From positions 775,708 to 839,707 of the forward strand of contig NW_019217795.1 of the NCBI RefSeq assembly GCF_002571385.2: a DNA stretch of 64,000 nucleotides, written 5' to 3'. Shown in pieces: positions 26,801-50,095 of this stretch. A program made the translations under genes and the position numbers. Position 1 is the first letter of the stretch. Each line of letters opens with the position of its first letter. The notes below the pieces were generated by a model that made no database searches, had not been told where the DNA came from, and worked only from the letters and a program-made list of their open reading frames with translations. The stretch is from Stylophora pistillata (taxonomy: Eukaryota).

Positions 26801-29497
26801 TCAAGTTGTGTCTGTCAGGCTACGAAACCGATAGATTTAGTTCTGGGAATATTTAAATTTGGATTGCATGTGGTCTCTTAAATGGTTTGATAAAGTACAA
26901 AATTAAGTTATTGAGTTTCAAAAGTAATCCAGTTTTGACATTTATTTTTTTGTGCCTTGTGATTAGCGTTAGAGATGTGCACCATCTTCTCAAACTTTCA
27001 CGTACAACGCTAAAACAAACTGCAGCTTAATCAGTTGGAATTTCTCACGCTTGAGGTTAGTTACGGTAAAAGCATTTCCATCACGAATCATCCTATTTTG
27101 AAATCCCTGCTTACCGGAATTCTCCCGGAAATGCGTCGATCTCATTCTAGTAACTCTATGGAAAATGTAACCTCAATTAAGTCAATCCAGTCGTGAAAAT
27201 GTGACCCCATTCAGTAGTTCAGCACATCCCCATTAGTCCGTTACTAGGAAGTACCGCTCCCCCCTCCTCCCTCTCGGTCTACACTGAGTGGCAAAACACT
27301 GTAAACCTTACTCCACGGTAGTGATAATAAAAACTCATTCATGCAAAAAGTCTATTAAACTTTACCAGGTTTGATCATCAAGTAAACTTCTTGCTTTCGA
27401 CTTATAAAAGCAGACGGTGCTTCGCAGAGGTAGATACCAGCATCGTGAAAATCCACAGCGTGGATAACAAACGTCTGACCAACTCGACTGACCCTGCAAC
27501 CATCTGCCATTCGTTCCTTTATCATACCAGAGGAAAGTTTTTGTTTTAACTTGACTCTTATTCGAGGATCGTTCATTCGACAGCTTATTATCACGGAATC
27601 TCCGACAGTTAGGTCTTTCTGTTGGAATGAATGCTTGGATTCCCATTGGAGAGCCTTAGCTGAAAAAAACAAAAACAAAAACAAAAAAAAACAACAACAA
27701 CAGGTCAATGAAGTCCTGCGAGTCTAGCAAACTATCACAGTCGGGAAAAAGATTCCGCCCTTCAAGAAAAGTCGATCTTCAAATAGAAATTCACATTTAG
27801 CTGAGAGGGTAAAAAAACTTTAAAGGCTGATAATTTCGAAACGTCAGCTTTTGTAATCGTTACGGTGGCCAATTTACTATTTCAACTTTGTTGATATATC
27901 CTAAAAAAAACTTTAATCTTTCTTGAAAGGTAAACAGACCTTAGGTTAATTTTTTTAAAATCTTTTATCACTTTCCCGCCCTCAGGAGCACTGCTTGATA
28001 TTTCTCTACTAAGCAGATCCAAAATCCTCCGTACATCCATACTTCTCTGAATAGGGACCTTGAGAAACCACGACGGCGACGGCAACGAGGACGTGGAAAA
28101 ACAAGAGATCTAATTGGCAAAACAGTAGCTCAGCACGTGCGTTTTGAAACTTTGTACATTTCATAGCCGTCCTATGCAAAACAACAACGTGAAATCGCCA
28201 AAATTTGCGTCGTCTGCGAACCGAAACCGCGACGGCAAATTATTTTGATTTCCATTTGGAACTCAACGGCTACTTTTTTCGTCCTGCGGAAGTTGAGCTG
28301 TGGCGCTATATGAGACAGTAAGCTCCTGCAGCCATTTTTGAAATTCTAACTAAGAGAAGAAATTCATTTTTTAATCGAAGTCTTCCTTGGCGTCGCCGTC
28401 GTGGTTTCTTAAGGTCCCTAACTAATACTTTACCTGGAGTGCCGCACATATTCTTGACGTCTCTCCACACCAGTCCCTTTGAGCAGTTCATTCTAGTGCT
28501 CTTCCCACCCGAGCAAACAAGGTATCCCGTAATGCTTTGCGGATCTGCAAACTTTCCATTAGGTTCCGGGCATTCTGAAGATGATCACACAGCGCATGTT
28601 CTCAGAAGAAATGAATTGCTTAATATATGTCCTGAAATGCTACAATCATCGTTCCTGAAATTTTATCCACTTTTTCATAAGATGTGGCATTTCACTTGTA
28701 GCCAGAGGCTACTGAAAATTATCGTCGTGACCTTCCGAACACCGATTATTTTCGTCTGATGCCTCTTAATTCCGGTTGATAAGTTGAAGTCAAAGCGCGC
28801 TAGAGTTAGTTGTATGGTTCCCCCAGATGCCCTACCCGTCTCAAAAAGTCTATGTTTACGCTAGTTATGAGCACCCGTAGGGAACCCATTCATTCCAAAT
28901 CAACACAATCATGTAGCATTACGATCTCCCAAAATTATAGAGACATAAATATCTGTCGGTACACGTTTAATACGAGGCAAAACCTGACCAACAGTTATTG
29001 TATATTTTACCTAAAACATTCAATTTGGTATGAGTTGACCAAAATCCAAACTTCTGAGCAGTTATAAACGCACGGCACTCGTACCAGCCACCCTGCGTCT
29101 TTGTAACGTTCTTTAATAGTAAAGTATTGATCCATATTTCTTCTTTTGCGATATCGTACCGTCTCCTGACTTCTTGATGCAGCATGGACAGAGGTCGTGC
29201 ATTCTTGTACCACTGAACCGAAGAAATAGTCTTGCCTTTTGCAGTACATGTTAGGTATTTATTTCTATGGACAACGACCCCTTGATATCTTGCTGTCACG
29301 TTGGGTCTTGGAGGGTCTACAGAAATACAAATTTCGCATCCATGTCGTTGCAACCCGACATTAGAAATTAAAACTCACAGGATTAGAGGTACGCCTTACT
29401 CGGAGATTGATCGATCTCAATGGTTGGCGTTATTGCAACTTCTTGCTTTCATTAGACTACGAGCAGTCCTTCTTTTCGGCTAAGTCAGTTGCGCGCA

Positions 29498-29544
<47 letters not shown>

Positions 29545-32500
29545 TAACGTTAGCGCGCCGCGCGGATCACTGGGAACAGGGCGAAGAGAGGTTCCCAACC
29601 CCTCTCCGCCCTGACTGGAAGTGAGGCGCACGACTAAAAGAAGCGCGCGAACGGACTCTTCGAAGAGGAGGGACTGCTTGTAGTCTATCGTTCAATGACA
29701 AATTCCGTAATGACATGGTAAGGTTCGCGAAAATATTTTTTGGGCCTCTACGTGTCCTATTGAGCTTAATTATTTGAGTTATAACTGAGGCCATGAGTCA
29801 CAACAACGGAATTGTTAACTAGGATAACACAATTCTCAATTTGCAACAACAGAAGCAGTGTCTGAATTTGATAGCTTGTTGATGTAGGGTAGAGAAACGT
29901 AAGGACAGAATGTTAACAGTCGATTCTACAGGCTTTCCTCATTACCTTGCAGTCTTGGTGTCACAACGATTCTTCCAATATTCTTGGAGAATCTGCGACT
30001 TCTCACCCTGCATAGATAGAGGCCCTGCATTTTGTTGCTTACTCCTTGAAGAGTAAATAGCTGCCCATATTTAGCCACGCCTTTTCTCGGTGTAAACATC
30101 GCCCCAGACGGTAACATCTGCCACAGTCTCACGTCCACCGTAGGGTCATTAAGCTCACAGCTGAGATCAACGGAAGAACCTTCAGGAACCGTACGATAAA
30201 AGTTTATCTTTCCTTTGTGCTGCAGTGATCCGCCTAGCAATCCCGGGAAGAAATGAAGAAAATAACAAGTTGTTAACCTAAATGTACCCAATGGAAAAAA
30301 ACGAAAATATCACTTTAAGTAACAAGTATGTGAACTAATAATTGACGATTTTGAAGAATTTTAGTGAAATTCTTCAAAGCGAAATCATCTTGGCGGATTT
30401 GACGATTTTGACGCAATTTTGTCTCATCTGCCATTTTCGTTAATGTATGCATTTTTGGACAGACTTTTCATTGTTTCCGGCTTATTATTAAGCAGTTTTT
30501 AATACTTTCAATTGTCAACATCTTATCTGACATCATCGTAATTATGTTTTCTGTGTTTTACAAATAACTCACAGCCGACATTGGAATTGATTTGCGAATT
30601 TGACCTCATTCTAAAGGATCAGGAGTTTGCTAAGTTCAGTCTTTGTACTTTTGAATCCCATTTATTTTTACGGTCATGTAACTTGATGTTTTCGACATTT
30701 ACTCAACACTGACAAAGATTGTACAAAAATCTAGTACTTTTTATGCCCTGTTCGTTCAGTGCTGTTGTCTTAGCTTGCCTGTGTGAGAGCGTCAACCAAA
30801 CCATCTATCGCTGGCTTGGCTCCAAATAAGGGGCTTAGTAACTTAGTAGCTTAGTTCAGTAATCTGAACGAACGCAATCTCCTTTGGCTTAATATATAAT
30901 TTTTTTCCAAGTTTTAAGTTGTTTTTAAGTTCTTTTATTCCCACTTTTCGTCATTTACAGTCCGTTTGCGAGGAAAAATGCGTCAATTTTCAGACGAAGA
31001 TAATGTATGAATTATCATGTTTTTTTGAACAAAGCCTTTCTTATCAGAGTATATTTGGGAAACGGTTTGAGAATAAAAATTCTAGAAATAGCGTTATGAT
31101 ATCATTTCCAAGTGAGAACCGATAAAAAAAAAAAACAAAACAAAACAAAAACAAAAACAATAACATGCAAGGTCGCGTATTATAAGGTAATATCAGACAA
31201 CTTTATACAAAATATTGGCTTGGGTGATTGGACACTAAGTTGGCGGTCCGAAACAAAAATCTATCGCTCGATTGGAGCCTGGTTCCGGGATGGTCTTACT
31301 GGAGTGATGGCTTCTACGGCTCACGGTTAAAATTTTGGCCATTTTTTTCTTTTTTCAATATCATTTCATCATTGTTGCCAGAAATTTTTTTATGGTTAAC
31401 TTTTTTATGTCTATTGGTAAAAATTTCAAGTGTCAATGTATATGCTCTAGGCTAAATATTTTGGTCATTTTACGGCTAACAGTTAACTCCATTGAGATCC
31501 TCTTGTCGTGTGTTCAGTTTGGGATTTCGGGCGCGATTATCGTACAACATTTTATAGATAGGCAGTCCAACTTTCCCTACAACTTTTTCAGTGACGAGAA
31601 GAGCTTGGAAAGGTTTCACATATTTCTACTTATAGACACCAAGTACATATCAATACTCGTTTTTATTATCCGCCAAATGTGCTTCGTAAAGTACAAATAA
31701 CGCGCGAGACGAGCACAAATATCACCCGATATTTGTACTTCCGAAATATCCGCGAAATTCACCCGCACTGAAGTAACAATTTGGCCTGTTGGATAATAAA
31801 TGTATCTTATTGAACGTTTCGTTGTGTGGTATCGTTGAGTATTTTTACTCCTTGTTTGTATTTGACTCGCCCTACGGGCTCGTCAAAATACGGCTCAATT
31901 CGTAAAAATACCAAGCGATACTACATAACAAAACGTCTAATAAAATATATTTATAATCCCACTGCACTAAGTCGAGTACAAATATCTTGCAATATTGGAC
32001 AGTTGGTTATTTTGTACTGTTAAAAAATTCGATCGACCGCTCGGCTGCGCACGCTACACTGCCCTACGTGCTTTGCTTTCCCCACTTTTACGTGATGTTT
32101 TAAATTTGTGACATGTTTGAATTTTGAATTAGTTCTTATCAGACATACCCCCAACGGTATATCCGTTGAAAAGTAGCCAAGGGTCGCTTGGCCAAAAGCT
32201 GGCTAAACAGATAATTAAAAAACTCAATTATTTATTATGGCTCACCGTCTGGCTTTTCAGTACCATGTTTCTCAATGAGAGAGTACTTTCAATTTTTCGC
32301 AGTGAGAGGGTACCTCCCAAATAAGTACCCAAAATTAAGCCTCGTTTGTTTGCAAAGTGCCAAACCACTAATTCATGACATCAGTTTTAACGCGTTAAAT
32401 TGGTTCACAAATAAACGAAGCGCCTTTCCGGGCGGAAATCCTTTGAACACTGGTAAAAATTAGGGTGCTATGAGATTGGCAAAATTGCCAAGTATATGCA

Positions 32501-33755
32501 GTGCTATTCCGCGAATTGTCGAAATTTTACGGACGTTTGAACAATGGGGGCAAGTTAATGCCCCCTTAATACAGATGCCTTCAAATGTCGCGACTTAACA
32601 GTGTCTTAGCTTCGTTAATTTTCAGCATATCACTCTCAAACTCAACAATTTTGCTAATCTCATTGTGGCCCTCTTTACAGCTGTGTCAATCGATTTCCGC
32701 TCGCCAAATCATGTCAAAAGTCGAGAAAACCGTGAAAGAGTATATTGCATGACAATCACAAATATCGGCACCGTAGTATTATTCCAAGTTCCAAAGGATT
32801 TTGAAGCACAGATGCCAAAAAAAAGACGCCGGAAATTAAAATTTCCTACTTGCAAGCCACAGTGTTATTTGTGGGATAAGAGCCTTTAATTGTCTTTGTT
32901 GTTATAAGCAAAATAACCGTCAGTGTTTCCGAATTAAGGTTGAAAATTAGTCGAAGATTCTGGAGTTATCTGCATGGGGTTATCAGTTTTAAATCTGCCT
33001 TTTTTTTAACAGATTAATTGAATTTTTCTCATTGATATTCAACGTAAACGTTTCTCTGCGATATGGTTCAATGTGTGCTTTTTTCATTATCAGAGGTTAG
33101 ATGAAAATAATAATAATAAAAAAAAAACGCCTGTAAGTTCAAGTAAAAACACTTGCAATTAAATTTAATGCAACGGTCGTTACAGGTTTATTGTTCTAAA
33201 GCAATGCAAACTTATCAGGAATTCTTAATGTTACGGTTTCGTTTTCTTTCCAGTTTCCATTTTATTCTAATTAGTTTACGCGAGACATATTTCCTACCCT
33301 ACCTCAGGAGTAGGGAAATGTTCCAACTTCACTAGAAATAAACCAAATTGAGCTTGTAACAGGTTTGTACTGAATCTTACAAGAAATTGAATATTTCATT
33401 TCACGCCTCTGAGAAAACATCCCGTGGATTTTGAGTGTTATTTGAATATTTTCCCAAATTCAGAAAATACCTCTAGCTAATACCGCCACCACATACGGCT
33501 TATGTCTGGATGCAGCGAGCGATTACAAAGTCACGACTGTAAAGAACGATTACATTTTTCTCCTATCCTCGCTGCTAAGGGATAAACAGAAAGGTCACTA
33601 GAAAACCATATTGTCAATCTAAAATAACGAAAGTGAAGGGTACGTCTTTTACCTTGAGCGCTCGTCTGTAAAATGCTCCATAAAGATACTGTTAACAAGG
33701 CACGCACGAATACACTCCAAAGCCAGCGCACGTTCGATCCCATCCAAATCGCCAT
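14873..33755 (-). CDS. VEGFR/FGFR-like receptor tyrosine kinase, 23 coding exons: signal peptide, 2 Ig, CBM14-like, 9 Ig, TM, kinase, tail ending ETVL
   Basis: Hand-spliced in frame through GT-AG junctions. Exons: 33755-33653, 30233-29946, 29316-29011, 28574-28434, 27659-27366, 26654-26352, 25156-24881, 24547-24230, 24086-23748, 22984-22655, 22321-22034, 21834-21505, 20888-20622, 20340-20059 (TM), 19346-19155 (LGSGAFG, VAVK), 18683-18576 ([15 protein letters not shown]), 17981-17782, ~17299-17177 ([11 protein letters not shown]), ~16848-16778 (PVKWMAIES), ~16523-16486, ~16229-16133, ~16053-15943, ~15151-14873. Confidence 0.9.
15420..15780 (+). mobile_element. Two decayed tRNA-derived SINE-like insertions in the last RTK intron
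   Basis: A/B-box-like remnants (GTGGCT..GG ... GGTTAGATTTC; GGTTCGAGCCC) followed by typical SINE body sequence. Confidence 0.5.
17343..17440 (+). repeat. Purine-rich GGGA/GGGGATA low-complexity repeat
   Basis: Repeated GAGAGGGGGATAGGG units. Confidence 0.8.
19540..19790 (+). repeat. Degenerate ~29-bp minisatellite
   Basis: Repeated TGT(G)ATTTTGGACACTAGTGGCCGATT-like units. Confidence 0.75.
28052..28420. mobile_element. MITE with TAG...CTA termini
   Basis: Terminal inverted repeats TAGGGACCTTGAGAAACCACGACGGCGAC / GTCGCCGTCGTGGTTTCTTAAGGTCCCTA; ends 13 nt from the CBM14 exon donor. Confidence 0.85.
28434..28574 (-). CDS. RTK exon 4: chitin-binding type-2 (CBM14/peritrophin-A)-like module
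   Basis: 141-nt phase 1-1 exon (cttcag|...|gtaaag) encoding [47 protein letters not shown]. Confidence 0.75.
29453..29687. mobile_element. MITE with internal poly(A) tract
   Basis: TIRs TAGACTACGAGCAGTCC / GGACTGCTTGTAGTCTA. Confidence 0.8.
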
Positions 33756-34569: not shown

Positions 34570-35233
34570 ATCGCTGGGAGGAAAAATGGAGAGTGTTTCG
34601 AGGGGTCTTTAATTTCACGAATTTATGATCAGTTTTTGCGATAATTGTAGCCTGCCAGCAAGTTCTGGGGGTGGAATGGCCAGGAGACCCCACCCCCACC
34701 TCAATCAATTTACCCACGTAGCGTCAAGGATCTCATAGAACTCGTTCAAATACGTACGTGCCTCTAAGATTAAGAATCTAAAAAACCTAATACATACTGT
34801 CAAGACCTAATAGATTAGAAATTGAAATTGGACTTTAATTGATTTTAATAAACATTGTCAGTCCAGTGACAGAATCCTTTATCACAGATGAAAAAGCGAC
34901 AATATAGTGTAATGTCAGCTCCCATTCAGCCTGTGTTACAAAATAAAGAATTCTATAGCTGAGAGGGAAAAAGGGACTCACTGAAACAAAATCAAGGTAC
35001 ACTTGATAAACAGAAACATAAACAACATGCAGTATGATGCACGATCCTCGATCATAACTTCTTAAACAAAATCTACGTNTTGCGATAATTGTAGCCTGCC
35101 AGCAAGTTCTGGGGGTGGAATGGCCAGGAGACCCCACCCACATCTCAATCAATCAATCAATACTTTATTTACCCACGTAGCGTCAAGGATCTCATAGAGC
35201 TCGTTCAAAATACGTACGTGCCTCTAAGATTAA

Positions 35234-38300: not shown

Positions 38301-39199
38301 TCATTTCAGGTCAAATTTTGTTACGTGGATCACTTGAGTATAACTGATGTAGTCAGAATCCTTTACAGTCTTAAACGGGCCATCCTCTAGCTCCTTAATT
38401 CCTTCTTCAATCTGCTCGTCAGTTAACTGATGAAGCATACTCATGTATCGGAACATCTCGTACAACTTGGATTTTGTCATAGATATCGGGTAGTTGAACT
38501 CCTTCTCTGATACGCGGACGTTTGCATTTACATCGAGCTTTCGGAGAAGTTTCCGCTTTTGGATGCCACTCTCCACCGCTACTTCCTCTACTCGTTTCGC
38601 ACTTTCGAAACAGGGGTAACCTGTGTCTATCGTGTTTACTTTGATAAATATACCACCGGGGCGTAAAGAGCGCAGGATACTTTCGTAAACGGCGACAGGA
38701 TCTGCGAAATGGTGCGCGGCACCAGTAGCTAGCACTCTATCAAAGCAATGGTTTATCTCGGAAAGAGAAAAAAACTCTTCAGCCGTTTTCAGAATGGGGT
38801 ACGTTCCGTGTCGCTTCCGTGCTTTTTCTTGCATCTCTGGGCTGGGATCCACGCACCAAATTGGTTTGGTCAATTTGCACTTTTCATAGAGTTTTTCGGC
38901 AATGAACCCCGTGCCGCTACCGATGTCAGCGACATTGTGATGTGGCTGCAAATCCAAACATTCTATCAGGACTGGAATATTTCCTTCATAATATTCCTCA
39001 TAGAAGTAATCGAACTTGTCTGCTACAGAACGATAGTGATCTGAAATAAAATAAAGAAAATGTCATTAATACATGGATTGAAGATGTTGGAGGGTTTTGT
39101 AGTTATTCTGCTTCATATGTTGTTTCTAACATTACCATCAAGCCGCCTTTCGAATTTTCCAGATACTGAAAAATCAGATGAAGAATTTTCCTTTGGCAT
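38301..39199 (-). CDS. Class I SAM-dependent methyltransferase, 2 exons (39199-39136, 39040-38301)
   Basis: Motif I VADIGSGTG, CVDPSPEM, FDRVL..AHHF, LRPGG. Exon 1 MPKENSS...RRLD splices in frame to DHYRS. Confidence 0.85.
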
Positions 39200-39385: not shown

Positions 39386-39694
39386 TTGACAAAGAGATAT
39401 AATCCCAAAGGACAGTATTCGTCAAAGGCGATACAAATATTCAAAGATCTTAGCAAGCTCGCAAACATTCCTACTCATAAATCGTCTGGAAAAGCAAAAA
39501 TGACAGGAGGGACTATATTTTTTGATTTCAAAGATCTGAAAGACAGGCTTATTAAATTGACAGGGAGTATAAAAGCTGGTAATTCAAGTATTCAGTTGAG
39601 AAATGAAGCGATAGAAATATTAGATCACCTCGTCAAAAAGAATAAAATTTCGAAAGAACAATATAGCAAGTATATTCAGAGACACTTAACATGA
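39386..39694 (+). CDS. 5'-truncated conserved Polinton hypothetical protein
   Basis: C-terminal LKDRLIKLTGSIKAGNSS..NEAIEILD motif typical of Polinton ORFs; starts at the element breakpoint. Confidence 0.6.
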   Translation: MTKRYNPKGQYSSKAIQIFKDLSKLANIPTHKSSGKAKMTGGTIFFDFKDLKDRLIKLTGSIKAGNSSIQLRNEAIEILDHLVKKNKISKEQYSKYIQRHLT

Positions 39695-40422
39695 CAGAGA
39701 CACCTATCTATCTCAACTCTTTGACTTGTAACAATGGACCGAGTCATAATTTCACAACATCTTTTAATCCTGTGATGAGGCTTGACCCAAACAGAGAGTA
39801 TTTTATTGCTCTCGATGAAATCGCAATGTCATACAGCTGGTACAATGTGAGCAACAGCTATGACAATAACAAACTAAAATATAGTCACGATTCGGGTACA
39901 ACATGGTATGAGATTGAACTCCCAGATGGGAATTTCGCATACGAAGAACTGAACGCTTATGTTCAGAGAGAGCTAGAGGGATCAAAACATTCAGAGACAG
40001 GCATTACAATAACATTTGTCCCAGCGCTTTTCAAAGTTCTGATCGGTCTCGAAGACGGTTTTCAAGTCGATCTGCAAACCGGAAATTTTGCCGATCTCAT
40101 TGGCTTCACAAAAAAGGTTGTTACAGCAACTAGCTATGGTGAAAAATCCCCTAACATAACAAGATCTGTCGATGACATCTACGTTCACACCAACATCATC
40201 TCAGAGAGTGTTGTTGGTGGTAAACAATCAGATGTGTTGTTTCGATTCAGTGTTGACAATCTCCCTCTCTCTTTCCCTTTCCATATCGAGCCAAGGAAGA
40301 AAAAGTATAGCAAAATAAACACAGGAGCTATAAAAGATTTGCAAATCTATATCACTGATTCACTGGGAAGACCGCTCGACCTCAACGGTCTACCCATCTC
40401 ATTAACACTTCTCCTGAAATAA
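39691..40422 (+). CDS. Minor capsid protein (penton, single jelly-roll)
   Basis: NFTTSFNP.MRL, SWYNVS..NN, LPDGNF..ELN, IYVHTNII.ES, IYITDSLGRPLDLNG..SLTL pattern; position in the structural module. Confidence 0.8.
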   Translation: MTETPIYLNSLTCNNGPSHNFTTSFNPVMRLDPNREYFIALDEIAMSYSWYNVSNSYDNNKLKYSHDSGTTWYEIELPDGNFAYEELNAYVQRELEGSKHSETGITITFVPALFKVLIGLEDGFQVDLQTGNFADLIGFTKKVVTATSYGEKSPNITRSVDDIYVHTNIISESVVGGKQSDVLFRFSVDNLPLSFPFHIEPRKKKYSKINTGAIKDLQIYITDSLGRPLDLNGLPISLTLLLK

Positions 40423-40464
40423 GTGTTCAAAAACAGATATTTTATTTCATACACTTGAAATAAA

Positions 40465-40922
40465 ATGGTTCGAATACAGATGAAAAGAGATGCCAATGGC
40501 AAATACGTCTTATACAATCTTGATGACGATCACTCACTTCAAGAGGGTGAAGGGATATTTAACACTCTCAAAAATGTTGGAACTAAAATAGCTACAAAAC
40601 TCACAGGGAAAACTGCAAAGGAGATGGCTAAAAAGGCAGCTACGAAAGCGTTTGAGAAGGGAGCAGAGCAGATCGGTGAAAAGATGGGACAGTTAATCGG
40701 TGAAAAGATTTACGATAAGTTCACAAAACAGACAAACCTCAAGTAACGCATCACGAAGTACCACTAGTCACACATCACGAAGTACCACAAATAAAAGAAG
40801 ATAAAGGAGAAGAGCTTGCAAAGCTATTGAAGAAAGATAAGAAGCCGTGGTCAAAAAAGCCACCAAAAAATAAAATTGAAAAAGACGATCTCTTTAGCGA
40901 TTTCGATGACCTTTTTTTATGA
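40465..40922 (+). CDS. Amphipathic Lys/Ala-rich virion protein (protein VI/cupiennin-like), 1-nt frameshift near 40725
   Basis: GEG|IFNTLKNVGTKIATKLTGKTAKEMAKKAATKAF. The -1 frame continues KPQVTHHEVP...FSDFDDLFL to TGA at 40920-40922. Confidence 0.55.
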
Positions 40923-40956
40923 AAAAAATAATCTCTTCTTTCTTGCAAAACACATC

Positions 40957-42292
40957 ATGACCTCCATGCGAACTGCAAAATTTTCGAAGGGGTATGAGTA
41001 TTATTCATATGAGCTCGATACTCCTCTCCAATCTGCACCAGCAAATAACAACTATCAAAAGAAGGATGGGTACAAGTTTACTGTTGACACATCAACAGCG
41101 TCAGAGACTGTAGCTGACTGGCATAATGCTTATTTTGAAATGGATTTTAAACTCACAAAGATAGATAACACAACCTATGGTGCGGCTGATGCAGCTGCAA
41201 TAATCAATGGAGGTTTTAGTCTGATAAAAGACATCAAAGTTGATTTTGAGAGTGCGAGAGTTCTCGATCTTCCAAGTGCAAATCATGCTGCAAATGTAAA
41301 GAATCTCACCGAGTTTACAGAAGAACATTCGAGAAAAGTAGGCCCCCGCCAATTTCACTACCCCGACACAGCTACCGGTGCAGTCATACAAAAGTATACA
41401 ACACTTGCTCTTGATAGGAATGCGCAGAACATAGCACCAACAGACAACACTGATTACAATGAAGGATTTACAAAAAGAAAGACTCTTCTCACCACAGGTG
41501 CTGAAAACAACATCCATCTACCACCCAACCGTTTTGGCTTCTTTGACTCTTTGGAAGAGCAGTTAGCACCCAATGCAAAGGTTAGTATTTATGTTAGACT
41601 TGAAGATGATGCAAATGTGTTGTTCATAGCAAATACCGCTGCGGCAGGTAGATACATCGTGACAAAGTTCCGCTTGTGGGTACCGATAATTAAAATGAAT
41701 GTCCTTGGACTAAAGACATTTGTCGATAACTTCCTCAAACCTCACAGATGGTCTTATCTGAGAGAGGAAATTGTTGATGCGGGACCGCTTCGACAAAAAA
41801 ATGGAAAATTCAGAATTACAAATGCTATCAGAAGACCAAGGCATGTTTTCATTTGGGTTCTTAATGCAACCAAGTTTAGCGATCAGGAACAGAACATGTT
41901 TGTGTTCAACAATTTCAACATCGCAAAAGCGAGGTACTTTACAAAGGCTCAACTTCGTGTGCAGAATGGTGAAAAGTATCCCTGATCAACAACTGGACCC
42001 AAGCAGCGAGCTGACAAGAGCATGGACATATCTTGCAGACTATGTAAAGTTTGTAAGCGGCAATCTGTTCGGTCCAACAATTGATGTGAAACAATTTCAA
42101 GATCTCTATGGAATACTTTACTTTGATCTGACACGACAATCACCAGAGCTTCTTAAAGTTACAACAGGTCTGGATTTTGAGTATAGTCTCAACAACACTA
42201 CCAACGCAGACTATCACATCTATGCATTGATTCTCAATGAGGAGGAACTTAGTGTTGAAGTCATGGGTGGAAAAGCACTCATCAGGAATTAA
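40957..42292 (+). pseudogene. Major capsid protein (double jelly-roll), +1 frameshift near 41981
   Basis: DWHNAYFEMDFKL, NGGFSLIKDI, FRLWVP, RPRHVFIW, NGEKYP|DQQL, FQDLYGILYFDLT. TATCCCTGAT carries one extra C. Confidence 0.85.
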
Positions 42293-42345
42293 GTAGACTT
42301 TTCGTCTTTTTTTGGATTTCATTATGTGACTCGCATAATAAAAAG

Positions 42346-43218
42346 ATGACGACTTATTACCCTCATGGAGTAACTCTTTCAGATAATCAGAGAAGGAAGC
42401 TTGCTAAAGCTTTCAACGAAGAATCACCCATCACTCTGCGTCTCTCACACAACGAACTGACTGGTTCTGATGAGATGATGCTGACATAGACACAGATCAA
42501 GAAGATTCAGAAAGCAATAAGCAATGGAAGAGGGGTTGACCTCAAAATCAGCAACACACAGATAACAAAGGTTGCTCAAAAAGGTGGCAGCCTCTTCTCA
42601 TCACTTCTCACTCTTGGTGTAAAGCTTCTCCCAAAAGCAATGAATCTCGCCACAAAGGCTCTCCCAGGATTGGCGACAGGAGCACTCTCAAGTCTGGGCA
42701 ATTTCGCTACTGACAAGATTTTTGGAGCTGGTCAGTCAGGAGGTTTGATAATTCCACATTCAAAGATTCCACAGCTTTTACCTTTTGAAAACCGTCCCTC
42801 AGAAAAGCAGAAACAAGACATTGCAATTGCTCTTCAATCTGGTGGTGACTTGAAAATGAAACCAACAAAGAGGCAGAGTGGTGGTTTTCTCGGTACTCTT
42901 CTCGCTTCAATCGGTGAGCCGATACTTCTCAAGGCGTTGACCGGAAGCGGTATGCGAAGCGGAAGCGGAATGCAGAACAGAAAGCCGAGAGGAAGAGGTT
43001 TACAGAACAGAAGCGCGTCAGGCGGAGCCGGTAGGGCCGGCAGGGGAATGCAAAACAGACCATATTGGTTTCCACCGAGTTTTGGGGAGCCACCTATACC
43101 ATTTCTACCACAGAATGGAAGAGGGGTGAAAGGGAAAAAAAAGCAGAAAGGAAAGGGTCTGTTGCTTGGCAGAAACTCCCCCTTCAACGGAGTGCCACTA
43201 CTAAAAGATATATTGTGA
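42346..43218 (+). pseudogene. Basic Gly-rich core/precursor protein with multiple GG/GxG protease sites; in-frame TAG at 42487
   Basis: MTTYYPHGVTLSDNQ...MLT*TQIKK...QKGG|S, QSGG|L, QSGG|F, repeated GSG/GRG + MQNR, ending GKGLLLGRNSPFNGVPLLKDIL. Confidence 0.65.
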
Positions 43219-43715
43219 AAAGACCACCCTTCAAAAACAGACCAATCACAAACCTTGACATTCAAAACTGGGTCGAATACCTCAAGATTCCAAACTTTGG
43301 AGGGGTGATTTCCAGGGATCAAGTGAAAGATTGTGAGATGGGACACTCTTTCGTCATCAATCTGAACGAGTCAGATGAGCCTGGTTCACACTGGGTGGCG
43401 ATGGTCTTTGGCTCTGATCTCATCTTGTACTTTGACAGTTTCGGTCTTGATCCACCACAAGAGGTGTTGATTCTTTGTAACAAACATGGAGTCAACTACG
43501 CATTCAACAACACACATTATCAGTCATTGACAAGCGTGTTGTGTGGTTACTATTGCCTCTTCTTCTTGAATGAAGTAAATCTCAGGATTCGGTTGAAACC
43601 CTCTCTTGCTCATCAAAGCTTGTACTCTGTCTTCAACGATGTGACAGAACCTCTGTCAGTGACTGACACTGAAGCGAACGAGCGTTTCATCAAAAAATAC
43701 TTCAAAGAGGTTTGA
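43137..43715 (+). CDS. Adenain-like (C5) maturation protease; no ATG upstream of the protease domain
   Basis: INLNES..GSHWVA, YFDSFG..PP, YQS..SVLCGYYCLFFL: His, Asp, Gln and Cys catalytic residues intact. Confidence 0.9.
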   Translation, partial: KKAERKGSVAWQKLPLQRSATTKRYIVKRPPFKNRPITNLDIQNWVEYLKIPNFGGVISRDQVKDCEMGHSFVINLNESDEPGSHWVAMVFGSDLILYFDSFGLDPPQEVLILCNKHGVNYAFNNTHYQSLTSVLCGYYCLFFLNEVNLRIRLKPSLAHQSLYSVFNDVTEPLSVTDTEANERFIKKYFKEV

Positions 43716-43772
43716 CTCTGAGTCAAAAACAAAAAAAAAACCTCTTCAAACTTTCTGAAGAGGTTACAAACA

Positions 43773-46073
43773 ATGGGGTATTCTGACGGTTATCATCGAT
43801 TCAACAGGCAAGGAGGTGCAAGCAAAACAGGTCCTGCAGGACCACCAGGCCCTGCCGGTCCAAAAGGAGAAAAGGGAGACGCAGGACAACAAGGGCAAAA
43901 GGGTGAGGCAGGGCCTACTGGTCCAAAGGGAGACACAGGACCACAAGGGCCGGCAGGTCCTGCTGGTTCAAAGGGAGACGCAGGACCGCAAGAACAAAGA
44001 GGACCAGCAGGACCTACCGGTTCAAAAGGAGACACAGGTCCTGCCGGCCCTACCGGTCTACAAGGACCAAGAGGACTAGCAGGACCTACCGGTTCAAAAG
44101 GAGACACAGGTCCTGCCGGCCCTACCGGTCTACAAGGACCAAGAGGATTAAGAGGACCGGCAGGGCCTGCCGGTCCTGCTGGTTCTGACGGTTCAAACGT
44201 TGATCTTTCAAATTATCTCGACAAAACAAAGGTTGGTGATTTGCAGAAGGCTTTGAAATTCGTCAGCTCACACGGAGCTGATAGACAGATTAGCGGTCTA
44301 TCCGATCAACCCCTAAACGGTACTGCAGCTGTCAATCTGAATAAACTCAACACCGAACTCGGAAAGAAGGCTGACACATCGACCGTAATTAACGGTCTGA
44401 CAGCAAAACTTAATACCTCCACATTTAATACGCAAATAGCAAGAAAACCAAATACCACATCTGTGTTGCTCTTGGATGGAAGTCAAAAGATGACTGGCAA
44501 CCTTGATCTGAACGGTAACGATGTGATTAATTCAAAGAGAGAGAATTATCTGGGTATGACTACCGCTCAGCAGTCCACTTATGAGAACTCAAACACACTC
44601 GTCTCTCGATATGAAGCAGGGGCAATGAAGAGGCATCTAAAGGGTCTACTCGATATTACCACTCTCTCGAATGCAAATCAAACATACGTTGACAATGTGA
44701 AAAAGACAGTGTCAAGCTTTAGAAATATAGANNNNNNNNNNNNNNNNAAAACTGTTGAGAGTCTTACCCAAACGAAGGTTAATAAATCAGGTGACACAAT
44801 GACAGGAAACCTCAATCTTGGTAATAATAAAGCAGTTAACTCTGCTGCACCAAGCAGCGGAGGCGATCTCTGCAACAAAACATATGTCGACACCCTTGTG
44901 GGGGTGACCAAAACCAACCTTGAAAAACATGTCGATGACCACCTTGCTCATAGCATCAGAACCACCAATCTGAAAAACGATCTCGATTATATCATGAACG
45001 AGATTATCGGAAATGAGTTCAGCGATGAAGATGATATCACCGGCAAAGTACAAATTTACAAAGACTTTCATAAATTTGCAAAGAATGTAAAACCGTTCGA
45101 TCTTCTTCTCGACACATCAAAAGGTTACTATTCAAGTCGCTTCGGTGTGAACATGTACTCTGCCGCAAAATCAGAGTACACAGTTGTCTGTGAAATGTGG
45201 TGGGAATCCAATAAAGTTGATTCAACCTCTGTGACTCTGACTGCCACAAGCTCTGTAGAGACAGTTTCAAGGCAGCGCTGCAATCGATTCTCAAATCATA
45301 TTGTCAGTCTCATACATATGACAAAATGGAGTGATGCAACACCCAATTATTTGATGTTCGACATCGTGATAAAAAACAATTCAGGGCAGGTCTATGATCA
45401 GAAACTTCCGATTTGGGTTGTGGTTTACGGAAGCAAGGGATACCACAACAGTCTGCCTGAAGATGTTTGGGATCGATGGTACTCTTTCTATGACAAAAAA
45501 ATGTACATTTATCCACAAGTCGAACTGATGAAGGAACCGAAGGATAATGCAAACCCAGCCACAAAGAAATATGTTGATGATATCAAAACAACATTACAGA
45601 CAAAGATCAATTCAAAAGCAACCAAAACAGCGCTGACAAACGCAACAAGAAAGATCTGGTATCGAGGAAACTGTGCTCACGACAATTCATCACAGGCAAG
45701 ATTCTAAGTAAATGGAGCATCAGATCATACCACATATGTATCACAGAGCGCTAACGCTGATTTCACAGTAAACAGTTCAGACAACACAAAACTCATAATC
45801 AACAACGCTGGTATGTATCTGATCACATACACCGATGGTATCAAGTCTAAACATCTATCACATCTCAGGTTCATCTTGGACAATCCGTTCATGACCACAG
45901 CAAACGGTATATTGGTAGCGCTACCCAACACAAAAAATACTTGGAAGACACTCGCTAATACCGTTCTATTATATTTCCAAGCAAACACATCGCTGAGCAT
46001 AGCGACAGATAACAGCTCTGTTCAACTCAATGGAACTGATGACAGCTATCTGATGATTGTGAAGCAGGATTGA
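43773..46073 (+). pseudogene. Putative virion fibre: collagen triple helix, phage-fibre-like repeats and beta head; in-frame TAA at 45705
   Basis: 41 Gly-X-Y triplets with one G>E change; [10 protein letters not shown] / GDTMTGNLNLGNNK and (A/N)TKxYVD repeats. ORF 45813-46073 (INNAGMYLITY) is in the same frame after the TAA. A small N gap lies at ~44732-44747. Confidence 0.7.
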
Positions 46074-46125
46074 GATTACGCTAGTAATAAAAAAGCTAAT
46101 TTTATTATGGGATGTTCATAATAAA

Positions 46126-46626
46126 ATGACTGACGCAACCATTTTCAACTTCAACCGTATCGACTACTCTATCGGAGAGGAGAAGATCGATGAGCTCAAA
46201 GCTCTTTACAAACACTATCACAAGAAGTGGTGGTGCTCGAGGAAGATCTTCAAGAGTTTCAAACGAAAGAGTCTTCTCTGCAACCTGGGAAGCACCATGC
46301 TCATCGTTATCGGAGGGATAGCTGGAGGGATAACCATGAACCCAATCCCGCTTGCTACAATATCAGGCACTGGCCTCCTTCTCAAGACGTACACCGATGT
46401 GAAGAAGTTCGACAGAAAGATCGATATGAGCAAATTTGCCTTTACAACCTATGAGAAGATCTTGACTGAACTGAGATCCTATCTGAGAGGAAGACCGTTC
46501 GACAGTGCATCGTTTCTCAATGAGGTGAGACTCATCGATGATACAATCACAGATCTGTATCCAATCTTTCAATCGACTAAAGTACTTAAGCAGTATAAAA
46601 CACGCTTCGAGCATAATAAGGTTTGA
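46126..46626 (+). CDS. Two-TM hairpin membrane protein (SLATT-like layout)
   Basis: Basic helix, hydrophobic LGSTMLIVIGGIAGGITMNPIPLATISGTGLLL, then helical FTTYEKILTELRSYL. Confidence 0.55.
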   Translation: MTDATIFNFNRIDYSIGEEKIDELKALYKHYHKKWWCSRKIFKSFKRKSLLCNLGSTMLIVIGGIAGGITMNPIPLATISGTGLLLKTYTDVKKFDRKIDMSKFAFTTYEKILTELRSYLRGRPFDSASFLNEVRLIDDTITDLYPIFQSTKVLKQYKTRFEHNKV

Positions 46627-46712
46627 GGTTTCTAAATACTTTCCTCTTTTGAAACGAAAGAGGAAAGTGAGATCTTCTCTTTAGTAGACAGTAGGCCCTG
46701 CCTCAGGCCGAC

Positions 46713-47401
46713 CTAACCTTCCTCTTCATCAGATGAAAGGGTGTCTTTATCTTCATCTTCATCTTCTTCATCAGATGAAAGGTGACCAACGGTTGTCTCT
46801 GTGGCAGTGATTTGACATAGATGTCATTCACCTTGATCTGCAGCGTTACAGCTTCTTCACTAATATAGATCGACTCGATTATCAACGCCATCTTCACTTT
46901 GCAATATTGATCAAGATAATCAAGTGGATTCTCTTTTGCTTTCTCTCTTGATCGGAAAAGTGTGTGTATATTCTGCGTCTTCTTAGAGATGATGAGCTTT
47001 GAATAAAGAATGGGGGGTTTTCCCTATTTCTCAATCAGAGGGAGTTTCAACATTGATGCAGTTTTAGGTTCATATCCGATCTTCTCAAGATGATCAGAAC
47101 ACGGATGTTTAAACTGTTTCAATCCATCATAAAAATCAAACTCTTTTTTTGATAGTTCATAGTCTACACCCCAGAGACAGGTGGGGATTGAGTAACCAGT
47201 GAAACCACCAGCTTTATCACGACTCTCTTGCACACCAAAAGAGAAGAGGAGAGGAGACTCAATCACCAACGGTCCTGGTGTATTTTCCCCTCCACCATTC
47301 TTCGCTTCAATATTGATTCTTTGATGACCATATTGGTTGACAACGGCTTCGTGGAATATGACATTCTCTTTGTTGAGCTTTTTGATACTTGTGAGTTGCA
47401 T
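46713..47401 (-). pseudogene. T7 gp2.5-like / iridovirus DUF2738-like ssDNA-binding protein
   Basis: GPLVIESPLLFSFGVQE, GYSIPTCLW, P.LYSKLI, NPLDYL..CKVKMALIIESIYI..LQIKV, and an acidic tail SSDEEDEDEDKDTLSSDEEEG*. One stop and two frameshifts. Confidence 0.6.
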
Positions 47402-47460
47402 TGTTATTATTATCAAACATTTTCTTTAAAACATTTTTTTTGAAAAAAGCAAGTGGATAT

Positions 47461-47600
47461 TTATCTCTGAAGAATAAGTATTTCTTTCGCTTTTGCATCG
47501 TTGACACTTATCTCTGAAGAATAAGTGTTTCTTTCGCTTTTGCATTGTTGACACTTATCTTCAGAGATAAGTGTTGCTTTCGCTTTGCTTTCGCTTTCAC
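47461..47600. repeat. ~47-bp tandem repeat (2-3 copies) in the divergent SSB/ATPase intergenic region
   Basis: TTATCTCTGAAGAATAAGT(A/G)TTTCTTTCGCTTTTGCAT(C/T)GTTGACAC repeated. Confidence 0.8.
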
Positions 47601-47646
47601 AAATTCAAGAGTTATATTTTCAGCGATACTTGTAGAATAAGCTAAA

Positions 47647-48294
47647 ATGGTCAACATTCCAAAATTGACTACAGAGAGTTCAAACGGAAATCGAAAGAGA
47701 AGAGCACCCGGTGTTGACTTTCTTGATGAAGAGTATAGGATGTTGATTGCCGGTCCGAGTGGGGCTGGAAAGACAAACACGCTTATGTACATGTTGAGAG
47801 AGCCGCTGGTCATTTACGAACAGATTTTTATCTATACTCCAAACATTCACCAAGAGCTGATACAAGATCTCCAAAAGATTATGCATCAGCACTCACAGAA
47901 ACTTGGGTATGATGTGTTGCATCTGATGAATCCTGATGAAATTCTTGACACAACAGAGTATCCAAGAGTGGGCAGGAAGGTTGTGATTTTCGACGACCTC
48001 ATCACTGCTCCTAATAACGTGCAGGAAAATATCTTGAAGCATTTCGTTGATGGAAGGCATCATTTAATCTCACCGGTGTATCTGAGTCAATCATATCACA
48101 AGACTCCTGTCAACAACAGATTGAACTGCTCTCATCTCATCCTGTACAAACCTGCAATGAATTGCCATCGCGCTATGATCGCTCGTGAGAATAGCTTTGA
48201 ACCAGATCTGTTCTCAAGACTGAAACCTTTTGAATTTCTTTTCCTCGACAAGGTGAAGGAGACATGCATGAGAAATTTCGATGAAGAAATCTAA
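47647..48294 (+). CDS. A32/FtsK-like genome packaging ATPase
   Basis: Walker A IAGPSGAGKT, Walker B VVIFDD, GRH..IS.VYLSQSY, RLNCSHLIL. Confidence 0.92.
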   Translation: MVNIPKLTTESSNGNRKRRAPGVDFLDEEYRMLIAGPSGAGKTNTLMYMLREPLVIYEQIFIYTPNIHQELIQDLQKIMHQHSQKLGYDVLHLMNPDEILDTTEYPRVGRKVVIFDDLITAPNNVQENILKHFVDGRHHLISPVYLSQSYHKTPVNNRLNCSHLILYKPAMNCHRAMIARENSFEPDLFSRLKPFEFLFLDKVKETCMRNFDEEI

Positions 48295-48308
48295 CGCTTT
48301 TTCAAGAG

Positions 48309-49175
48309 ATGAAGAGTTATTGTGTCAAACAGAGAAAAAAGACTGAGTCTGTATCCGGGAGCGAAAGACGGGAGATTGCAAAAAACGGTCGTCCGATCAT
48401 CAAATCGAAGTGTGCAGAGTGTGGCATTACAAAGGTAAGGTTTCCTAGTGGTGTTACCACCACTGAAAAAAAAGGCGGGGCGCTCTTTGATGATGTAGGA
48501 AGGACCAGCACTTCGCTGTTAGAGATGGGGATGAAGGGGTTGGCTAATCTCGGACAGTACGGTCTTGCAAAGGCTGTCAATTCTAACTATGGAAAGAAGA
48601 AGATGAAGCAGACAGCAAACAAATATCTCGATCAAGCTATCGATTCTTTTGCTAACGATATGAGTAGAAAAATCGGGAGAAGTGTTTATGATGTTAATGA
48701 AGTGTTACCAATGTCAATGTATGCTCCCGATCGTGTTAATGATCCGACACACCCCCTTTATGAAGGAGGATCCTTCGATATTCACAAAGCTATCGGAAAA
48801 CTACCAAAACCGAAGAAGGGTTGGACTCTTCCAGGTCATAAGTATACAGGACCGTACAACGACCTTGCAAATCAGGTGAGGTATAACCCTCAGACGGGTG
48901 AGATTCTTGAGATTTTTGATAAGCCAACAGGACCGACTGACGCTGTCGCTATGCAACATGATGTTGATTACAGCGTCTGTACAAACAAGACAGACCCAAA
49001 GAAGTGTAAGAATGCGACTGACCGTAAGATGTTGAAAGCTCTCGATGCGATTCCAACGAGTGAGAGACAGTGGGGGCATTGGGCTGCAAGAAACATCATC
49101 AATACCAAGCAGAAGCTTGGTTTGGGTGTGGGGAAAAAAAAGCTCAGAGGAAGAAGGGGTGGCAAGAGGAATTAG
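48309..49175 (+). CDS. Zn-ribbon plus parvovirus-type phospholipase A2 domain virion protein
   Basis: N-terminal YCVK..KT...CAECG.TK; LPGHKYTGPYN (Ca-loop-like) and DAVAMQHDVDY (HD..Y catalytic). Confidence 0.8.
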   Translation: MKSYCVKQRKKTESVSGSERREIAKNGRPIIKSKCAECGITKVRFPSGVTTTEKKGGALFDDVGRTSTSLLEMGMKGLANLGQYGLAKAVNSNYGKKKMKQTANKYLDQAIDSFANDMSRKIGRSVYDVNEVLPMSMYAPDRVNDPTHPLYEGGSFDIHKAIGKLPKPKKGWTLPGHKYTGPYNDLANQVRYNPQTGEILEIFDKPTGPTDAVAMQHDVDYSVCTNKTDPKKCKNATDRKMLKALDAIPTSERQWGHWAARNIINTKQKLGLGVGKKKLRGRRGGKRN

Positions 49176-50095
49176 CAGAGGAGTTGCACAGACCGGTGAG
49201 GCGAAACTTCAGAAAACGACGCGTTATTGTCAAAGGAATCGATGAGATTTGGTGCTCCGACTTGGTTGAGATGCAAAAGTTTGCAAAGTGGAATGAGGGT
49301 TTTAGATATCTGCTGATGGTTTTGGATGTCTTCAGCAAATACGGCTGGATCGTTCCGTTGAAGAACAAGAAGGGTGAGAGTGTTTCGGAGGGGTTCAGAA
49401 AGCTTTTCGCTGAAGGGAGAAGACCGAAGAGACTCTGGGTTGACAAGGGTTTGGAGTTTAACAACAGTCATGTTAAAGATCTGATGAAAGCTGAAGGTGT
49501 TGAGATGTACTCGACAGAGAATGAGGAGAAATCGTCTGTCTGTGAGAGGTGGAATCGAACGATCAAAACGGAGATGTGGAAGCAGTTTACCATTCAGAAT
49601 AACACACAGTATCTCGACATTCTGCCAAAGATTGTCAAGAAGTACAACAATCGAAAACACAGATCAATCGGTATGACTCCGACAGAGGCTTCCAAGAAAA
49701 AGAATGAGAATGCCGTCTTTCTGAAACTCTATGGCGATCTGAGCGAATTGCGAGAGAAACCAAAGTTTGCGGTTGGCGATCACGTTCGAATCTCCAAATT
49801 CAAGCGAAAAGTGTTCGACAAAGGATTTACCCCTAATTGGACAGTGGAGATTTTCGTCGTTGACGAGGTGCAATATTCCAACCCGATCACTTACAAGTTG
49901 AAGGATCTGCTCGGGGAAGAGATCAAAGGTTCTTTCTACGAACACGAGATGTTGAGAGCAAAGCAGGATGTTTTCCGCATTGAGAAGGTTATTCGAAGGA
50001 GTAAAGGGAAAGCTTTCGTGAAGTGGAGTGGTTACCCAGAAAAATTAAACTCGTGGATTGATGAGAGAGAACTTCAGGGGGTAGGTCCTACCTAA
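49136..50095 (+). CDS. Retroviral-type (rve) integrase with C-terminal chromodomain; no ATG before the catalytic core
   Basis: ELHRP.R, WCSDL (D), LWVDKGLEF (D), VCERWNRTIK (E), YNNRKHRSIGMTP, chromodomain FRIEKVI..VKWSGY..NSWI. Confidence 0.93.
   Translation, partial: KKAQRKKGWQEELAEELHRPVRRNFRKRRVIVKGIDEIWCSDLVEMQKFAKWNEGFRYLLMVLDVFSKYGWIVPLKNKKGESVSEGFRKLFAEGRRPKRLWVDKGLEFNNSHVKDLMKAEGVEMYSTENEEKSSVCERWNRTIKTEMWKQFTIQNNTQYLDILPKIVKKYNNRKHRSIGMTPTEASKKKNENAVFLKLYGDLSELREKPKFAVGDHVRISKFKRKVFDKGFTPNWTVEIFVVDEVQYSNPITYKLKDLLGEEIKGSFYEHEMLRAKQDVFRIEKVIRRSKGKAFVKWSGYPEKLNSWIDERELQGVGPT

Follow-up and report, generated by a model that had tools for sequence, protein, structure and literature searches.

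A CBM14 exon between two immunoglobulin-like domains of a predicted FGFR-type receptor tyrosine kinase gene of Stylophora pistillata

The window analysed here is a stretch of 64,000 nucleotides of the Stylophora pistillata genome (assembly GCF_002571385.2, contig NW_019217795.1, positions 775,708 to 839,707 of the forward strand), and it contains on its minus strand a gene for a receptor tyrosine kinase (RTK) with numerous immunoglobulin (Ig)-like domains. An exon of this gene, located between the exons of the second and third Ig-like domains (Ig2 and Ig3), encodes a CBM14 (peritrophin-A) module. This observation, initially made in a sequence-only reading of the window, was confirmed. The explanation that we favour, and that we regard as probable when all of its parts are taken jointly, is that the exon is real, coding and constitutively included in the transcript; that it encodes a minimal two-disulfide CBM14 of the Der p 23 type, placed between Ig2 and Ig3 of a type-I, FGFR-type RTK with 11 Ig-like domains and a kinase predicted to be catalytically intact; that the receptor belongs to a small stony-coral family in which the module appears to predate a tandem duplication; and that the exon seems to be under stronger purifying selection than the adjoining Ig exons.

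The CBM14 exon, its predicted fold and its splicing

The CBM14 exon and the two exons that flank it are located as follows.

29011 to 29316, minus strand: Ig2 exon, phase 1-1; Pfam Ig_3 (38 bits) and I-set (34 bits); RNA contigs 29318-29011 join 28574
28434 to 28574, minus strand: CBM14 (peritrophin-A) exon, 141 nt, phase 1-1, four cysteines; identified by Pfam, structure model, RNA and conservation
27366 to 27659, minus strand: Ig3 exon, phase 1-1; Pfam Ig_3, ig, I-set and a weak VEGFR-1-like_Ig match; contiguous in RNA after the CBM14 exon

On the minus strand the exon 28574-28434 reads aa/TGC..CCA/g, with cttcag on its acceptor side and gtaaag on its donor side, and its in-frame translation is a peptide of 46 amino acids. 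The donor of the Ig2 exon is at 29011 (tta g/gtaaaa) and the acceptor of the Ig3 exon is at 27659 (ttttcag/ct). Since the junctions at the three exons are all in phase 1, the reading frame between Ig2 and Ig3 is kept with or without the CBM14 exon. The splice sites and phases agree with the clean, symmetric phase 1-1 exon described in the sequence-only reading, and the translation agrees with every letter of the residue pattern given there.

The peptide was matched to the Pfam family CBM_14 (PF01607) with 38 bits (E 1.8e-9; positions 1-47 of the 53 profile positions), the curated cut-off being 22.1 bits. By this score the peptide belongs to the CBM14/peritrophin-A family, as had been proposed from its cysteine spacing. 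The match is not due to chance, because the exon reached an E value of 1.1e-6 when the complete 398-Mb genome was searched in six frames with the CBM_14 profile. The exon is unique in the genome, and the next best matches are 37-40% identical to it.

The motif of the family is C1x15C2x5C3x9C4x12C5x5-9C6, with the disulfides C1-C3, C2-C6 and C4-C5 (PMC10619976). The peptide has only C1, C3, C4 and C5 and so differs from the six-cysteine motif. In the HMMER alignments to solved CBM14 chains, the C2 position is occupied by Ile14 and the exon stops before C6, which means that exactly one disulfide (C2-C6) is lost; the published pairing supports the proposal that the joint absence of C2 and C6 amounts to the loss of a single bond. 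The two remaining disulfides, C1-C3 and C4-C5, are those common to tachycitin, Der p 23, Blo t 12 and CHIT1 (PMC4844120). The incomplete motif does not exclude membership in the family, because the accepted member Der p 23 has the same reduced set of cysteines.

The structure of the 46-amino-acid peptide was modelled with AlphaFold2 from an alignment of 11 sequences (A1). The model has five strands and a predicted local distance difference test (pLDDT) score of 89.6, and in a Foldseek search against the PDB all of the 12 top matches listed were CBM14 structures, with TM-scores of 0.66-0.92. The leading match among those listed was Der p 23 (4zce; TM-score 0.92, root-mean-square deviation 0.6 Å over 44 columns); the others included CHIT1 (5hbf; and the nuclear magnetic resonance CBM14 structure 6so0), Avr4 (4z4a, 6bn0), EHEP (8in3, 8in6), Blo t 12 (2mfk) and tachycitin (1dqc). 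A sequence search of the PDB was concordant, with matches to the CBM14 chains 8in3, 6g9c and 4zce, and a search of the ESM Atlas gave no usable match. The distorted beta-sandwich of the CBM14 fold is thus found in a prediction, not in a solved structure.

The RNA mapped to positions 27300-29400 was derived from four runs of four studies, namely poly(A) contigs (X1), contigs (X2 and X14) and raw stranded reads (X24). In the contigs of three studies (X1, X2 and X14), the segments 29318-29011, 28574-2843x and 2765x-27366 are present in one molecule, and the coordinates of the contig records match the proposed junctions exactly, base for base. The first joint, 29011>28574, has an explicit entry with minus-strand GT..AG borders; the second, 28434>27659, lies beside a T-rich repeat, has no joint row there and follows from the unbroken numbering of the records. 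The two junctions that had been proposed from the sequence were in this way recovered in RNA. In addition, five of the X24 reads cross 29011>28574, with all first mates on one strand, and the depth of this run over the CBM14 exon (3.7-6) equals that over the flanking exons (3.4-7.7). The alternative splicing that had been suggested for the symmetric exon was not seen: a joint skipping from Ig2 to Ig3 was found in none of the four runs, though contigs can hide rare isoforms, and an alternative exon was rejected on this basis.

We consider it highly improbable that the exon is not a part of the receptor, but an open frame that arose by chance, a fragment of a repeat or nested gene, or an exon seldom included in the transcript. 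Such an origin is suggested by a high-copy repeat that ends close to the donor site, and by the symmetry of the exon, whose skipping would keep the frame. However, the spliced contigs of three studies and the stranded reads of the fourth place the exon between Ig2 and Ig3, its RNA depth is the same as that of its neighbours, it has no second copy in the genome, and its synteny with Ig2 and Ig3 is kept in other corals. A nested gene or a false exon was rejected, as both are contradicted by the spliced RNA.

The repeat just mentioned is an interspersed element of ~370 bp that occupies positions 28010-28421 and 27797-27938 of the intron that separates the CBM14 exon from the Ig3 exon. A first look at the genome gave at least 2015 candidate copies, and most of those that were scored are 94-97% identical. 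In each of the four runs the element is highly abundant, from both strands, with depths of 1e4-1e5 in contigs; an Rfam search with it gave no match. It stops 13 nt from the CBM14 donor site, and splicing is undisturbed.

The receptor gene, its kinase and its family

The gene was analysed exon by exon using profile, homology and fold searches. The remaining exons assigned to it, listed in the order of transcription, are the following.

33653 to 33755, minus strand: candidate signal-peptide exon, proposed from a script scan (ATG, hydrophobic stretch and phase-1 donor AAG/GTAAAA)
29946 to 30233, minus strand: Ig1 exon, phase 1-1 by splice and phase scan; weak Pfam Ig_3/ig; 69% identical to orthologous exons in L021 and L023
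26352 to 26654, minus strand: Ig4-like exon, phase 1-1 by phase scan; no Pfam family at E<0.1; 68% identical to an orthologous exon after Ig3 in L018
24881 to 25156, minus strand: Ig5 exon; Pfam Ig_3 (51 bits) and I-set (49 bits); phase scan
24230 to 24547, minus strand: Ig6-like exon, by open frame and phase scan; no Pfam family; 5' boundary uncertain
23748 to 24086, minus strand: Ig7 exon; Pfam I-set (39 bits); phase scan
22655 to 22984, minus strand: Ig8-like exon, by open frame and phase scan; no Pfam family; 5' boundary uncertain
22034 to 22321, minus strand: Ig9 exon; Pfam ig (38.8 bits); phase scan
21505 to 21834, minus strand: Ig10 exon; Pfam I-set (41.7 bits); phase scan
20622 to 20888, minus strand: Ig11 exon; Pfam Ig_3 (55 bits); tblastn of the orthologues P0059 and P0058
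20059 to 20340, minus strand: transmembrane and juxtamembrane exon; hydrophobic stretch followed by YRRRQ; orthologue tblastn 67-72%
14876 to 19347, minus strand: tyrosine-kinase and C-tail exons; Pfam PK_Tyr_Ser-Thr pieces, orthologue tblastn, DFG present; tblastn bounds 19347-19156, 18684-18574, 17982-17782, 17308-17180, 16854-16777, 16524-16483, 16243-16106, 16052-15945 and 15151-14876

The splice-phase scan gave phase 1-1 for the CBM14 exon and all 11 Ig-like exons, eight of which match Pfam Ig families. About 232 nt of an X14 RNA contig (record 7) are located upstream of the Ig1 exon and are compatible with the candidate signal-peptide exon. The Ig exons are followed by the transmembrane/juxtamembrane exon, whose juxtamembrane part was found only twice in the genome (in this gene and in its tandem paralogue), and then by a split tyrosine kinase with the G-loop, the DFG and all catalytic motifs. 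A single transmembrane segment together with such a kinase domain identifies the product as a receptor tyrosine kinase, and the Ig, transmembrane and PK_Tyr exons bear out the 11-Ig kinase architecture described earlier. Exon shuffling, which had been put forward as the origin of the architecture, is plausible because every ectodomain exon is in phase 1-1.

The best match of the kinase is FGFR1 (E 8e-59, versus ~1e-52 for KIT and VEGFR2). In P0007, a paralogue from Desmophyllum pertusum, the kinase insert aligns to that of FGFR1 with no gap, and an extra insert of ~23 residues is present in the N-lobe; the open reading frame (ORF) of the window exon at 17773-17931 equals P0007 in length over the kinase-insert stretch. 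The nearest named relatives are cnidarian "FGFR-like" proteins, followed by bilaterian FGFRs, and a PDB profile search with alignment A1, which was dominated by the kinase part of P0007 and was uninformative on CBM14, gave the FGFR likeness again. The kinase is thus closest to FGFRs, with their short kinase insert. The ectodomain differs from the FGFR form of three Ig domains and an acid box, as it comprises 11 Ig-like exons and CBM14; an acid box was not specifically searched for. VEGFRs are characterized by seven Ig domains and a long kinase insert (~70 amino acids). Neither was found here, the receptor having 11 Ig-like exons and an insert of FGFR length, and the matches to VEGFR-1-like_Ig and Ig_PDGFR_d4 were all below the threshold. 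The term "VEGFR-like", applied to the kinase in the sequence-only reading, is therefore not the best label for what appears from its sequence to be an FGFR-type kinase.

A tandem paralogous receptor kinase gene in the same orientation extends from window positions 61231-64000 (minus strand) into C12:839708-849707 and C12:849708-859707, with the order four Ig exons, CBM14 exon, about seven more Ig exons, transmembrane exon and kinase. Its CBM14 exon (L012:930-1073, minus strand), 11 kb beyond the window, is 144 nt long, in phase 1-1 and 40% identical to that of the window gene, and it keeps the spacing C-x18-C-x9-C-x12-C. The C-tail exon of the paralogue is at window positions 61231-62220, and its juxtamembrane exon is 53% identical to that of the window gene. 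At least three receptor-type genes with CBM14 are present in D. pertusum. One of them, OS493_037693 (Ig, CBM_14 and PK_Tyr), has four Ig exons and a CBM14 exon that is directly followed by the transmembrane exon. On the same D. pertusum contig, a model of 1334 amino acids with CBM_14 and Ig lies directly upstream of the model of P0058, an orthologue of the kinase half, and we read the two as one gene split by annotation; a further model of 858 amino acids on this contig contains Ig, CBM_14 and PK_Tyr. The CBM_14 scores were 29.5 bits for the paralogue, 38.2 bits for the D. pertusum copy and 41 bits for the orthologues.

Orthologous exons were identified on nine coral genomic contigs (seven different sequences) by a scan of coral-associated metagenomes and by a protein search. 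They are 70-79% identical at the amino acid level, and all have four cysteines. Wherever a flanking Ig exon lies on the same contig, tblastn shows the order Ig1-Ig2-CBM14-Ig3-Ig4 to be unchanged, and the flanks diverge at once outside the CBM14 exon. Orthologues, named in the sequence-only reading as a check of the architecture, thus keep the Ig-CBM14 order in coral contigs, and Ig and CBM14 are also combined in the receptor genes of D. pertusum. The nonsynonymous divergence (dN) of the CBM14 exon is 0.13-0.19, about half of that of Ig2/Ig3 (0.28-0.36), and its ratio to the synonymous divergence (dN/dS) is 0.10-0.21, a rough value because dS is near saturation (~1).

Further searches were made for other family members. 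A protein search with the open frame of the exon, covering proteins of up to 1050 amino acids, gave one orthologous fragment. Among the best 120 relatives of P0059 with 330-1050 amino acids, PF01607 was found in P0007 only, a result that by its length limits says nothing on absence in longer proteins. A search of representative sequences with the juxtamembrane exon gave mostly short, exon-sized fragments and yielded P0007 and P0021. On L027 (Ga0126339_10006470), at 1956-2085, a CBM14 exon of the paralogue type (ECLEPNGTFADP...) is distributed over two frames, the first part being interrupted by stop codons in its own frame; a frameshift in this copy or a fault of the assembly could account for this.

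Several points weigh against the explanation that we favour. The CBM14 fold is a prediction from 11 aligned sequences, and the role of the module in binding and signalling is putative. Contigs drop rare isoforms, so that low-level skipping of the exon is possible, and the saturation of dS also affects the comparison of constraint. The full-length orthologues compared are from stony corals alone. Moreover, the position of the module varies: it follows Ig2 in the window gene and Ig4 in the paralogue, and in one D. pertusum gene it immediately precedes the membrane. This is more easily reconciled with a generic module than with a fixed pocket for a ligand formed with Ig2/Ig3.

Candidate ligands of the CBM14 module

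Receptors of the FGFR, VEGFR and PDGFR types bind their ligands through the Ig domains D2-D3. In the receptor described here, the CBM14 module may be a working part of the N-terminal ligand-binding region, and a ligand would then drive dimerisation and switch the kinase on by trans-autophosphorylation. We read the module as a putative binding module, extracellular and apparently under selection, with chitin as one among several candidate classes of ligand. A chitin-derived or other N-acetylglucosamine glycan is a doubtful candidate for this ligand; a protein or some different non-chitin compound, in line with what is described for EHEP and Der p 23, is a fair candidate that we would still place below an even chance; and a mainly structural or spacing role is possible but doubtful.

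Binding of chitin or chito-oligosaccharides, by which the receptor would become a chitin-sensing RTK directed at fungi, prey, symbionts or chitin made by the coral itself, was the function suggested in the sequence-only reading, and we judge it unlikely. In its favour, both the profile and the predicted fold identify the module as a true CBM14, and the exon is strongly constrained. The aromatic residue of its G-L-x-aromatic motif is an invariant Trp (GLVW) in all receptor-type copies (A3), including paralogues that are 37-39% identical. In our own hand alignment this Trp was aligned to CHIT1 F456 and tachycitin Y46, and it presumably corresponds to an Avr4 Trp as well. The closest other CBM14 of the genome (37% identity) forms the end of what is probably a class III chitinase; it, too, is devoid of C2 and C6, which suggests that the four-cysteine form is probably used for chitin in the coral lineage. 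Chitin synthase genes are present in stony corals (PMC10216261).

On the other hand, the Trp of the CDWP motif is lost in all receptor-type copies, with CGTP at C5 in the window module and CDTP, CDKP, CTLN and CNAV in its relatives, whereas CDWP is retained by other CBM14 domains encoded in this genome. This Trp corresponds to CHIT1 Trp465, a conserved and exposed binding residue, and every cysteine of the CHIT1 domain is reportedly required for chitin binding (PMC4844120). Of the best structural and the best PDB sequence match of the module, namely Der p 23 and EHEP, the latter is reported not to bind chitin and to bind phlorotannins, and the former is described as a non-binder in a second-hand statement of the same source (PMC10619976). 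The variable position of the module along the ectodomain also argues against chitin. Taken together, it seems rather unlikely, as judged from the sequences, that the module still recognises chitin or chito-oligosaccharides of fungi, prey cuticle or the coral itself, and that chitin would thereby activate a stony-coral RTK.

The same losses (the CDWP Trp and the C2-C6 disulfide), the variable position and the documented non-chitin folds of Der p 23 and EHEP speak for a repurposed CBM14 fold, which would serve a protein or non-chitin ligand or form a rigid, disulfide-stapled spacer between Ig domains. To this we assign close to an even chance. However, a pure spacer is not expected to evolve more slowly than the adjoining Ig domains, and the invariance of a surface Trp across such divergent paralogues is likewise a point against a new use of the fold.

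The closest non-receptor CBM14 mentioned above (L002, C64:463087-466215; 417-974 and 1432-1770) follows a Thr/Pro-rich linker, is without C2 and C6, and keeps CDWP. Residues 29-61 of the ORF upstream of it match the C-termini of class III chitinases (33 residues, E 1.3e-4). The chitinase context is given by this 33-residue match only, and a search of the genome with the GH18 profile gave no match beside this CBM14. From these sequences, the four-cysteine CBM14 seems to be also the chitinase-linked form of the coral.

Neighbouring elements, novelty and comparison with known systems

Between the two receptor genes, an intronless block of ORFs at ~39400-54400 (plus strand) looks like an integrated element of the Polinton/Maverick type. 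It includes a packaging ATPase of the Pox_A32 type (47647-48294, 45.9 bits), an rve integrase with a chromo domain just below the cut-off (49070-50095), a large pair of ORFs with a DTDS polymerase-like motif and no Pfam polymerase match (50875-54351), and a collagen-repeat protein (43773-45707). Adjoining this block, an intergenic, intronless ORF of 218 amino acids at 38301-38957 (minus strand) encodes an S-adenosylmethionine-dependent methyltransferase (Methyltransf_11, 57.5 bits). Runs of N, which are assembly gaps or masked sequence, are present at 56716-57534, and short ones near 34900, 44750 and 55140.

The sequence-only reading had not recognised a CBM14-bearing Ig kinase as a known architecture, and in full-text literature searches we likewise found no description of a receptor kinase with CBM14; in public records the architecture is present only as automatic domain calls on coral "hypothetical proteins". 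As far as these searches show, an expressed and conserved CBM14 in a multi-Ig FGFR-type receptor is apparently undescribed. RTKs gain new ligands mostly by the shuffling of ectodomain modules. If the module binds chitin-derived glycans, glycan sensing would be directly linked to tyrosine-kinase signalling in corals, with a bearing on fungal and pathogen recognition, feeding, symbiosis and the skeletal matrix. No animal receptor kinase whose ectodomain binds chitin is known to us; a chitin-binding receptor of this kind would be the first, and would be a functional parallel to the LysM receptor kinases of plants. If the module does not bind chitin, it would be a clean natural case of a carbohydrate-binding fold that has been reused in a receptor.

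The receptor can be compared with several known systems. With the FGFR-type RTKs (bilaterian FGFR1-4 and cnidarian "FGFR-like" proteins) it shares the kinase, the catalytic motifs and an Ig ectodomain with a single transmembrane segment; it differs from them by its 11 Ig-like domains (three in FGFRs), CBM14 and the ~23-residue insert in the N-lobe. The module has the same four-cysteine, two-disulfide form without C2 and C6 as the dust-mite allergen Der p 23 (4ZCE), which ends right after C5. Der p 23, however, is a free, secreted mite protein and not a receptor module, and the sequence identity is 27%. The proven chitin binders with six-cysteine CBM14 (the chitin-binding domain of CHIT1, tachycitin and Avr4) share with the coral module the family, the fold, the C1-C3 and C4-C5 disulfides, the x9 and x12 spacings and the G-L-x-aromatic motif, whereas the coral module is devoid of the C2-C6 disulfide and the CDWP Trp and is three residues shorter between C1 and C3 (x18 compared with x21).

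At the level of architecture, the VCBPs of amphioxus and Ciona are similar in combining Ig-type and CBM14-type domains in one extracellular protein. VCBPs are secreted, contain two Ig domains of the V type and, at the C-terminus, a chitin-binding domain, and have neither a transmembrane segment nor a kinase, whereas the coral module is internal and part of a signalling receptor. Sweet Tooth of Hydra is a receptor kinase with C-type lectin domains, and the plant CERK1 senses chitin with LysM (CBM50) domains and has a Ser/Thr kinase. The likeness of these two to the coral receptor is one of concept only, namely an ectodomain of a carbohydrate-binding type on a kinase, as neither of them contains CBM14 or Ig domains.

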